A stretch of DNA of 64,000 bases, from contig JAWQFM010000008.1 of the NCBI GenBank assembly GCA_033442325.1, positions 1,782,287 to 1,846,286 on the forward strand. Reading direction: 5' to 3'. How positions within the stretch are numbered: the first letter of the stretch is position 1; each line of letters begins with the position of its first letter. Below the pieces are notes generated by a model. It was not told where the DNA came from and did no database searches. It worked only from the letters and a program-made list of their open reading frames with translations. The stretch is from Salpingoeca rosetta. Lineage: Eukaryota; Protista; Choanoflagellata. Made by a program: the position numbers and the translations under genes. Below, one piece after another: positions 5,901-7,415 of the stretch.

Positions 5901-7415
5901 ACCGCACCTGCTTACGTCGAGCTCACGTGTGAACATGTGCATGTGCGTGCGTGTGCACAGATGGATGAGGTGCTGATCACGGCGTCGCGAAACGGGTCGG
6001 AGTCCAGCAGCGCTGATCTGCGGCGCCAGGCAGAGGCCGCACCCACGGCAGAACTCAAGGTGGCATGCTCACACACACACACACACACACACACACACAC
6101 ACACACACACACACACACACACACACACACACACACACACACACACACACACACACACACACACACGCGCGTGCGCGCGCTGAGTTTGAAGCAATATCCC
6201 ATCCGCATGCAACAAGGGACGCCTCCTGGTACACCAACTTTTGCACATCACTTGTCTCCCATCACTTCACGGGCTATTACTCCATCCCCCCTCACGACGA
6301 TTGTCCAACCATAACCACCACCGCCACTACTGTTTCGTGCAGGCTGCTCTTGCTGGCGCAGCAGATGCGATGAAGTCCTTTGAGGAGCAGGTGGCACGAG
6401 AGGCGCTCGCTGCTGTCGTGGACACCGCGCACAACACCATGCCCACCGCATTCGTCAAGGTCACCGGCCACCTCTTCGATAAGGTGTGGTAATTGAGGTG
6501 ATGGTGGTGTGGGTGGTGGTGGTGGTGGGTGGCAGTGTTGTTGTTGTTGTTGTTGTTGTTGTTGTTGTTGTTGTTGTTGTTGTTGTTGTTGTTGTTGTTG
6601 TTGTTGTTGTTGTTGTTGGGACATGTATTCATGTGCTGCTCTGTGTGATGCAACCGGACCAAGCGTGCTTGGTATGACGACACTTGATGTTGTGGGCGCG
6701 ACACGTGTGTCACTTTCCTTCTCTGTCTTTGTTTTCCAGTCACACCCATTCACACACATGCACACACGCACAAATGCACACATGCACACATGCACACGAC
6801 ATGCACAAACATACTTACACACATGTTCTGTAGGCTGTGTTGAACCGGCTGTTGGATTTGGTGGTTGAGAGCCCTTGCTCGTTCCAAGTCAAGAATCTGA
6901 TTGTGCCCGCAAACAACGAATCCTACTCCTGGGCTGGTGAGGAGCAGGCACTCCCCTGTGTTGTTGTTGCTGGTAGCTGGTGATGTAACACGATTGCATG
7001 CACTGGCATTGGTATCTGTGTCATCCTTCACCGTCTCTCATTGGTGCCTCATGTCAACCACACACACACACACACACACACACACACACACACACACACA
7101 CACACACACACACACATGCATTACACAGTGCTGCAGCTGTGGGGCACGAGTGGGGATGAGGTGGCGGCTGTTGTTGATGAGATGCGCCAGCTTGTGGACG
7201 CCAACGCCGCCATTGCGGACTGCACACTCGAGCGCGTGGCCGGCCCTGATGGCGAACCATTTGCACCCCCGACACAGCAGGATGGTGGTCACAATGGTGA
7301 TGACACCAGCGGTGACGACGACGACAGCAATGACAACGACAGCGTCACCGATGACAGTTTCAGCAGCGCGAGTGCCGCTGGTGCCAACAGCACTGATGGT
7401 GAGCATCCAAAGTGA
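2957..7415 (+). CDS. LYS21: Homocitrate synthase (fungal Lys20/21-type, alpha-aminoadipate lysine pathway) with N-terminal mitochondrial-type presequence and C-terminal ACT-like (LOR/SDH linker-type) domain; about 12 exons
   Basis: Motifs [80 protein letters not shown] and [10 protein letters not shown]. All exon junctions read in phase through to TGA at 7413-7415. The N-terminus is Arg/Ala/Ser/Thr-rich. Confidence 0.93.
4006..4112. repeat. (TG)n microsatellite, intronic; representative of dozens in the window
   Basis: Uninterrupted TG run of about 100 bp. Confidence 0.97.
6536..6618. repeat. (GTT)n microsatellite, intronic
   Basis: Pure trinucleotide run. Confidence 0.95.

Follow-up and report, generated by a model that had tools for sequence, protein, structure and literature searches.

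Structure of the homocitrate synthase gene

We analyzed a stretch of 64,000 nucleotides of Salpingoeca rosetta DNA (assembly GCA_033442325.1, contig JAWQFM010000008.1, positions 1,782,287 to 1,846,286), here called the window; positions refer to it unless another contig is named, and the gene described lies on the forward strand. The window has the character of eukaryotic DNA, and its introns are short, bordered by GT-AG and rich in microsatellites. It contains a predicted homocitrate synthase (HCS) gene whose product continues past the catalytic part into a C-terminal domain of the Pfam family PF04455 (Saccharop_dh_N, LOR/SDH conserved region). The whole coding region extends over 2957..7415 in 12 exons, encodes 632 amino acids and ends with a TGA stop codon at 7413-7415. 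The exon lengths total 1899 nt, equal to 632 codons and the stop, and all 11 introns have GT-AG borders.

The start codon in the public model is the ATG at 2957, located 36 codons upstream of an ATG at 3065. The N-terminal residues, about 55 in number (2957..3121), are predicted to be disordered, the predicted local distance difference test score (pLDDT) of the full-length model staying below 50 over residues 1-55, and they are possibly an organelle-targeting presequence. The catalytic part occupies exons 1-8 (3140..5617), with Pfam matches to the HMGL-like TIM barrel (residues 62-323) and to HCS_D2 (residues 337-415). Exon 9 (5961..6059) encodes residues 424-456 of a helical linker, with helices 421-433 and 440-448 and the start of helix 453-485. 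Exon 10 (6343..6483) encodes residues 457-485 of this long helix (6343-6429), followed by strand beta1 and the sequence GHLFD (6466-6480). Exon 11 (6834..6936, phase 1) encodes residues 504-538, with helix alpha1, strand beta2 and the start of strand beta3, including N507, D511 and V514. According to the Pfam envelope and the structural model, the first part of exon 12 (7129..7241, residues 538-575) encodes beta3, alpha2 and beta4 of the domain. The whole exon covers 7129..7415, and its remaining codons (7242..7412) specify a low-complexity, Asp/Asn/Ser-rich and mostly acidic tail of about 57 residues that is predicted to be disordered; D, E, N and S make up 53% of residues 586-632, and the pLDDT is below 50 at residues 584-630. 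This tail is specific to the species: the relatives stop shortly after the PF04455 domain. Long microsatellites can be observed in the introns and flanks at 4005-4114 (GT)n, 6065-6167 (CA)n, 6537-6617 (GTT)n, 7066-7116 (CA)n and 8446-8500 (GTT)n.

The 12 exons joined correspond to the public protein "homocitrate synthase [Salpingoeca rosetta]" (632 aa; P0160 below). Using tblastn, every in-frame exon translation was found to be an exact consecutive substring of this protein, with single-residue gaps only at five split codons. The exons were searched individually, and P0160 was used in place of the joined product; it was reached by a word search, the relatives search with exon 2 having returned long relatives and not the S. 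rosetta protein. Additionally, complete open reading frames (ORFs) derived from the transcriptomes of many species, including Didymoeca, Diaphanoeca, Salpingoeca urceolata, Amoebidium, Syssomonas, Rigifila, Euglena and diplonemids, join the catalytic part to the domain within a single frame, with all three Pfam families. All three are likewise encoded without interruption in genomic DNA, in ORFs of 525 and 605 aa on compact metagenomic contigs from eukaryotes. As a weak hint, of the words sampled from 5900-7500 about 0.42 are present in seven sequencing runs from two studies, and the estimate for exons only is about 0.38. Judging from these sequences, the architecture of HCS with a C-terminal PF04455 domain in S. 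rosetta is close to certain, its splicing being based on the public model and on the transcripts of relatives.

The catalytic part

Both catalytic Pfam families are matched by P0160 well above their cut-offs (HMGL-like, 261.2 bits with a cut-off of 29; HCS_D2, 105.2 bits with a cut-off of 27). Of the single exons, 1, 2, 3 and 5 match HMGL-like, and 6 and 8 match HCS_D2. The protein aligns to Schizosaccharomyces pombe HCS (3IVS) with 452 bits and to the Thermus thermophilus enzyme (2ZTJ) with 406 bits. The metal and 2-oxoglutarate ligands R43, E222, H224 and H226 of S. pombe (native numbering; the 3IVS chain is numbered native + 5) are kept as R70, E251, H253 and H255, and H253 and H255 are invariant in 48 full-length homologues. 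The gene encodes, by sequence, a homocitrate synthase (EC 2.3.3.14), predicted to form homocitrate from acetyl-CoA and 2-oxoglutarate, the reaction that starts lysine synthesis by the alpha-aminoadipate pathway.

The S. rosetta genome also shows collinear exon matches to models of alpha-aminoadipate reductase and homoaconitase, as well as two saccharopine-dehydrogenase genes. Moreover, LYS20 is listed in a published survey among the genes retained by choanoflagellates and lost in animals (PMC4339202). Given these pathway genes and the retention of LYS20, a biosynthetic role of the enzyme is reasonable. On a compact, eukaryote-like metagenomic contig with uninterrupted ORFs (L007:803-5680; ENA ERZ28008908), and likewise on a JGI contig, a fused HCS gene directly adjoins aconitase-family and Iso_dh genes; these neighbours may encode homoaconitase and homoisocitrate dehydrogenase, in which case the three genes would form a cluster of the lysine pathway.

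Family and fold of the C-terminal domain

The PF04455 profile matches residues 494-575 of P0160 with 42.1 bits (E 1.2e-10, cut-off 23.5), over profile positions 4-85 of 100, a score well outside what chance would give. In the window the match corresponds to 6454-6483, 6834-6936 and 7129-7241. An earlier note on this DNA, made from the sequence alone, had proposed such a domain at 6448-7240, which is nearly the same span, and the three C-terminal peptides that it quoted are real and in phase, being encoded by exon 10, exon 11 and the start of exon 12. Searched singly, exon 11 matches PF04455 (E 0.043, profile positions 15-46) and gives no match in the PDB, and exons 10 and 12 give no Pfam match.

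A profile built from 52 homologous C-terminal domains (A1) was compared with the PDB, and its matches were ArgZ (6JUY, residues 287-368, E 3e-12), AgrE (6LRF) and MJ1480 (3MGJ), with E values from 3e-12 to 2e-10. The same profile, run against the 55-Mb S. rosetta genome, found only this gene (exon 11, E 8e-9; window positions 7116-7247, E 2.7e-4). The Pfam PF04455 profile found no match in that genome, because the domain is divided among three short exons.

The AlphaFold2 model of residues 488-585 has a mean pLDDT of 90.2, and DSSP assigns the order E-H-E-E-H-E, that is beta-alpha-beta-beta-alpha-beta. The top fold match obtained with Foldseek and VIA-align is MJ1480 (3MGJ_B; Foldseek E 7e-8, Z 13.5, root-mean-square deviation 2.4 over 86 residues), followed by AgrE and ArgZ (Z 10.7-11.2). 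ACT domains come next, namely 1u8s (Z 10.0), 5jlp (SerB2, whose ACT domain has serine bound, Z 9.2) and 3ibw (the ACT domain of RelA, Z 8.7); Z values of 8.7-10.0 are common among ferredoxin-like folds, and the likeness to ACT domains is at the fold level only. In the full-length model the linker forms helices at residues 421-433, 440-448 and 453-485 (33 residues), with block mean pLDDT values of 87-94 over residues 421-480, and the long helix leads straight into strand beta1 of the domain.

From these data we conclude that the C-terminus is a domain of about 85 residues that belongs to PF04455 and is modelled with an ACT-like fold. The expectation that HCS continues into a genuine domain of this kind is therefore borne out by the profile search above cut-off and by the structural match to 3MGJ; the ACT part of it holds for the fold, and membership in the ACT family by sequence was not found.

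Among the 52 domains, G, H, D and N are invariant; L, F, D, V, F and S are nearly so. G498, H499, D502, N507, D511 and V514 are invariant across 48-52 very distant eukaryotic homologues. They occupy the loop between beta1 and alpha1, where ACT domains usually bind their ligands, and one face of alpha1.

Distribution and origin of the fusion

The survey comprised the best 120 relatives of a choanoflagellate homologue, 52 of which had a precomputed PF04455 match. In a 53rd carrier (P0195) the domain was detected by profile comparison (probability 98.9), so that the fusion is present in at least 53 cluster representatives. The choanoflagellate carriers are S. rosetta, Monosiga, Barroeca, Didymoeca, Diaphanoeca and S. 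urceolata. Further carriers were found among ichthyosporeans (Creolimax, Amoebidium), in Syssomonas and Rigifila, and among amoebozoans (Pyxidicula, Paramoeba), euglenids (Euglena, Rhabdomonas), diplonemids (many), chlorarachniophytes and Paulinella. HCS sequences that lack the domain include those of Capsaspora, Corallochytrium, Chromosphaera, Euglypha and S. pombe, and bacterial enzymes such as that of Caldilinea.

In a tree calculated with a quick IQ-TREE run (LG+G4) on an alignment restricted to the catalytic core, of 119 rows and 361 columns, the 53 carriers all fall into a single clade, with an SH-like approximate likelihood ratio (SH-aLRT) support of 99. With P0195 counted as a carrier, the tree fits a single gain of the domain followed by its retention, as far as can be judged from the sequences. 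Branching within the clade is poorly supported and discordant with the species tree. The holozoans are split, the domain type being present in Syssomonas, Creolimax, Amoebidium and the choanoflagellates, and the short type in Corallochytrium, Chromosphaera and Capsaspora; furthermore, choanoflagellate sequences stand at several positions within the domain clade, with weak support. This split and the scattered choanoflagellates suggest either gene transfer or an ancient paralogy in which different lineages lost different copies. The survey of holozoans and other protists speaks against a local holozoan novelty, the carriers being a single ancient clade with members in several supergroups of eukaryotes.

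The earlier note had also proposed that the domain was recruited from the saccharopine enzymes. In S. rosetta contig 6 (1116170-1122363), an AlaDh_PNT_N match lies about 5 kb upstream of Sacchrp_dh_C matches on the same strand, and this gene is probably a bifunctional lysine-ketoglutarate reductase/saccharopine dehydrogenase (LKR/SDH) of the AASS-like type. No PF04455 match was detected between the two halves of this gene, and word searches limited to the domain returned as nearest sequence relatives HCS fusions throughout. The relatives with solved structures are an archaeal ornithine-cyclodeaminase-type protein and the cyanobacterial ArgZ and AgrE. On these three grounds, neither a saccharopine-enzyme donor nor a direction of transfer is supported. 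None of 185,579 species genomes contained a prokaryotic copy with the sequence GHLFDKA[VI]L, a narrow pattern whose lack of matches is not proof of absence.

Relation to known enzymes

The fungal and Thermus enzymes, represented by S. pombe Lys4 (3IVS, 3IVT, 3IVU and 3MI3), Saccharomyces cerevisiae Lys20 and Lys21, and T. thermophilus HCS (2ZTJ), have the same catalytic TIM barrel and subdomains as the S. rosetta protein. Whereas they end after subdomain II, the S. rosetta clade adds about 70 residues of helical linker and the PF04455 domain. In agreement with the earlier statement that fungal HCS have no such domain, the S. pombe 3IVS chain aligns only up to residue 430 of P0160. In comparison with S. 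pombe, moreover, the clade has Asn or Ser in place of D123 and is relaxed at R288 and Q364. In the fungal and Thermus enzymes, lysine inhibits by competing with 2-oxoglutarate in the active site (PMC8276798).

MJ1480 (3MGJ), ArgZ (Sll1336, 6JUY) and AgrE (Alr4995, 6LRF/G/H) share the Pfam family, the fold and the motif GHL[LF]D..N..D..V with the S. rosetta domain, at a sequence identity of 16-28%. In these proteins, however, the domain is N-terminal to an ornithine-cyclodeaminase-type domain (ArgZ-like_C), whereas in S. rosetta it is located at the C-terminal end of a Claisen-condensing enzyme. The interdomain region of plant LKR/SDH, from which the name "LOR/SDH conserved region" derives, is of the same Pfam family, and that enzyme also acts in lysine metabolism; it is catabolic, though, and carries the domain between its two enzyme halves. 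In the streptophyte SDH and LKR/SDH clusters of the ESM-Atlas, 80-88% of the members have PF04455, with TM scores of 0.76-0.78 to the domain model. The resemblance to the plant domain that had been claimed holds at the level of family and structure.

The layout of a TIM barrel followed by subdomains and a small C-terminal alpha/beta domain is also found in isopropylmalate and citramalate synthases, which carry LeuA_dimer, and in Sulfolobus HCS, for which a C-terminal RAM domain is reported as a mode of lysine control. LeuA_dimer is a different domain family from the C-terminus of P0160, which gave no match to PF08502 (LeuA_dimer) in Pfam. The layout of isopropylmalate synthase, in which the small C-terminal domain senses the end product of the pathway, follows PMC9860122. 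The structure 6KTQ, which is HCS of S. acidocaldarius (PMC10464499), aligns to residues 53-411 of P0160 only and is absent among the fold matches listed for the S. rosetta domain. If the role of PF04455 on HCS is regulatory, it would be an independent solution. Finally, the ACT domains (SerB2, the GcvR-like 1U8S and the C-terminal ACT domain of RelA) resemble the domain in topology and in the conserved beta1-alpha1 loop, at the Z values given above, but it does not belong to them at the sequence level.

Constraint at lysine-response positions

The 372 columns of the core alignment were ranked by how far they vary in the domain clade while being conserved in each of the two groups that lack the domain. 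S. pombe R288, which corresponds to R276 of S. cerevisiae Lys20, has a column that ranks second, and that of S. pombe Q364, which corresponds to Q366 of Lys21 (mutation Q366R), ranks 15th; both are relaxed only in the domain-bearing clade. The substitution R276K in Lys20 desensitizes the yeast enzyme to lysine (PMC8276798), and at both positions mutations in the yeast enzymes do away with inhibition by lysine. Relaxed constraint at these two columns is suggestive and in line with a regulatory role of the domain.

The column of S. pombe D123 corresponds to residue 150 of P0160 (window about 3540-3542). All protist-type HCS in our set, with or without the domain, have Asn here (some have Ser or Gln), in a motif N-x-Y-M-A-T-S; S. 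pombe and most other domain-less sequences, including Caldilinea, have Asp, in D-V-V-[IF]-G-T-S. We take D123 to be the lysine "switch" that contacts the lysine inhibitor in S. pombe, and its role was reportedly treated by Bulfer et al. in 2010. Loss of D123 was considered as a mark of the domain clade and rejected, as Asn or Ser occurs in protist-type enzymes of both kinds.

Possible role of the domain

The C-terminal domain may be an effector-binding, ligand-sensing regulatory module, a proposal drawn from sequences and models that we regard as the best reading, although we consider the case for it evenly balanced. Of the functions put forward in the earlier note, allosteric feedback by lysine or formation of a pathway complex, either is plausible, with indirect support from the column ranking, the tandem copies and the fusions described here. 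In the HCS dimer, the two C-terminal domains would pair, as is usual for ACT-like domains, and a small molecule would bind to the beta1-alpha1 loop at the invariant polar residues G498, H499, D502, N507 and D511. The likeliest effector would be lysine or a close basic metabolite of the pathway. The helical linker could then relay the signal to subdomains I and II, which cover the active site of the partner subunit. Such control through the domain would add to, or replace, the competitive inhibition by lysine at the active site of the fungal and Thermus enzymes.

Several observations bear on this proposal. The ACT-like fold, the structured linker, the single origin of the fusion with later retention and the pathway context, all described above, count in its favour. 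The GHL[LF]D..N..D..V pattern is also present in ArgZ and AgrE despite the different partner enzyme, which argues that these residues serve the domain's own function and not the contact with a particular partner. In Euglena gracilis (P0181), two tandem PF04455 copies were found at residues 440-537 and 538-637 (28% identity, E 1e-9; two stretches in Pfam), as expected of a module that works in pairs. A second copy may also be present in the euglenid enzymes P0179, P0190, P0192 and P0199, where about 100 residues follow the first domain.

The ESM-Atlas contains a eukaryotic cluster of 53 members, in which haptophytes are the commonest taxon, made up of proteins of about 450 aa with dihydrodipicolinate synthase (DHDPS, PF00701) and PF04455 in 100% of them. 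DHDPS is the committed and classically lysine-inhibited step of the other lysine pathway, the diaminopimelate pathway. In the same atlas PF04455 is fused to SDH, LKR/SDH, ArgZ, ornithine cyclodeaminase and DDAH-like enzymes; all fused partners handle lysine, ornithine or arginine.

A number of points weigh against a regulatory role. PF04455 domains are not known to bind a ligand. The ACT-clan Pfam families gave no match at E <= 0.1 to P0160 and nine relatives. The column-rank test was devised after the data had been seen, and the third desensitizing site, S385 of Lys20, ranks only 184th of the 372 columns. The D123 position does not discriminate, given that Asn and Ser are found there in protist-type HCS of both kinds. 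Furthermore, the full-length model has no inter-domain confidence, and the placement of the domain against the catalytic core is not fixed by it. Finally, ferredoxin-like domains of this shape also act purely as dimerization modules, and dimerization domains of the M20 family score Z 9-10 against the domain model.

This last point leads to the explanation that ranks next after the regulatory one, although we consider it unlikely: the domain could be a structural module only, which stabilizes the HCS dimer or builds a higher oligomer by side-by-side pairing and senses no ligand. The M20 domains are among the best non-family structural matches, the rigid helical linker would suit an architectural role, and the tandem duplication in euglenids fits pairing as such. 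On the other hand, the domain keeps polar residues (H, D, N, D) invariant, which group at the classical ACT ligand loop instead of forming a hydrophobic interface and stay the same across partners as different as HCS, DHDPS, SDH and ArgZ. A generic dimerization module would not explain why the partners all act on lysine, ornithine or arginine, and the constraint at the lysine-desensitizing sites is relaxed in the very same clade.

Another explanation, which appears to us distinctly improbable, is that the domain docks HCS to other enzymes of the lysine pathway in a metabolon, or to a separate regulator, for example by heterotypic pairing with a PF04455-like protein. Free-standing PF04455 proteins of 92 aa do exist and are abundant in bacteria (a cluster of 3,935 members in the ESM-Atlas), and on the metagenomic contig L007 the fused gene has homoaconitase-like and Iso_dh genes as its neighbours. 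However, neither the A1 profile nor the Pfam PF04455 profile found a second copy of the domain in the S. rosetta genome, so that no homotypic partner protein is evident there. A gene-model artefact, in which the last three exons would be a separate small gene or lie outside the mature mRNA, is hardly credible: an in-frame ATG is indeed present at 6370-6372, but the annotated public protein joins all 12 exons, the fusion stands in one frame in the transcriptome ORFs of many species and in uninterrupted genomic ORFs, read-through from exon 9 into the intron would give a His-Thr repeat encoded by (CA)n with no sensible end, and the representation of the region in the sequencing runs near the exons-only estimate is further, weak, evidence.

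Significance

Flux through the alpha-aminoadipate lysine pathway is controlled at homocitrate synthase, which is subject to feedback inhibition. A conserved ACT-like domain on it in a whole protist clade would, if the regulatory role is true, represent a further regulatory solution in the superfamily. Full-text literature searches with the domain name and accession, and with HCS and choanoflagellates, found no paper describing this architecture; P0160 and its Pfam matches were already present in public databases.

The regulatory role, if true, would also give the first functional handle on PF04455, a family so far known only as a "conserved region". The presence of the same domain on DHDPS, LKR/SDH and ArgZ/ornithine cyclodeaminase makes a sensor of basic amino acids a concrete hypothesis. 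In its widest form, PF04455 might be a dedicated sensor of lysine or a related basic amino acid that was attached independently to HCS in this protist clade, to DHDPS (haptophytes being the commonest taxon) and to catabolic enzymes of lysine, ornithine and arginine, and that in the HCS clade took over feedback control from the competition of lysine at the active site; this is tentative, and our doubts slightly outweigh our belief in it. Such a takeover, if it occurred, would have left the R288 and Q364 positions free to vary.

Eukaryotes hold two lineages of HCS, one with and one without the domain. Their patchy distribution, with Syssomonas set against Corallochytrium, and Creolimax and Amoebidium against Chromosphaera, has to be considered in reconstructing the loss of the lysine pathway on the animal stem.

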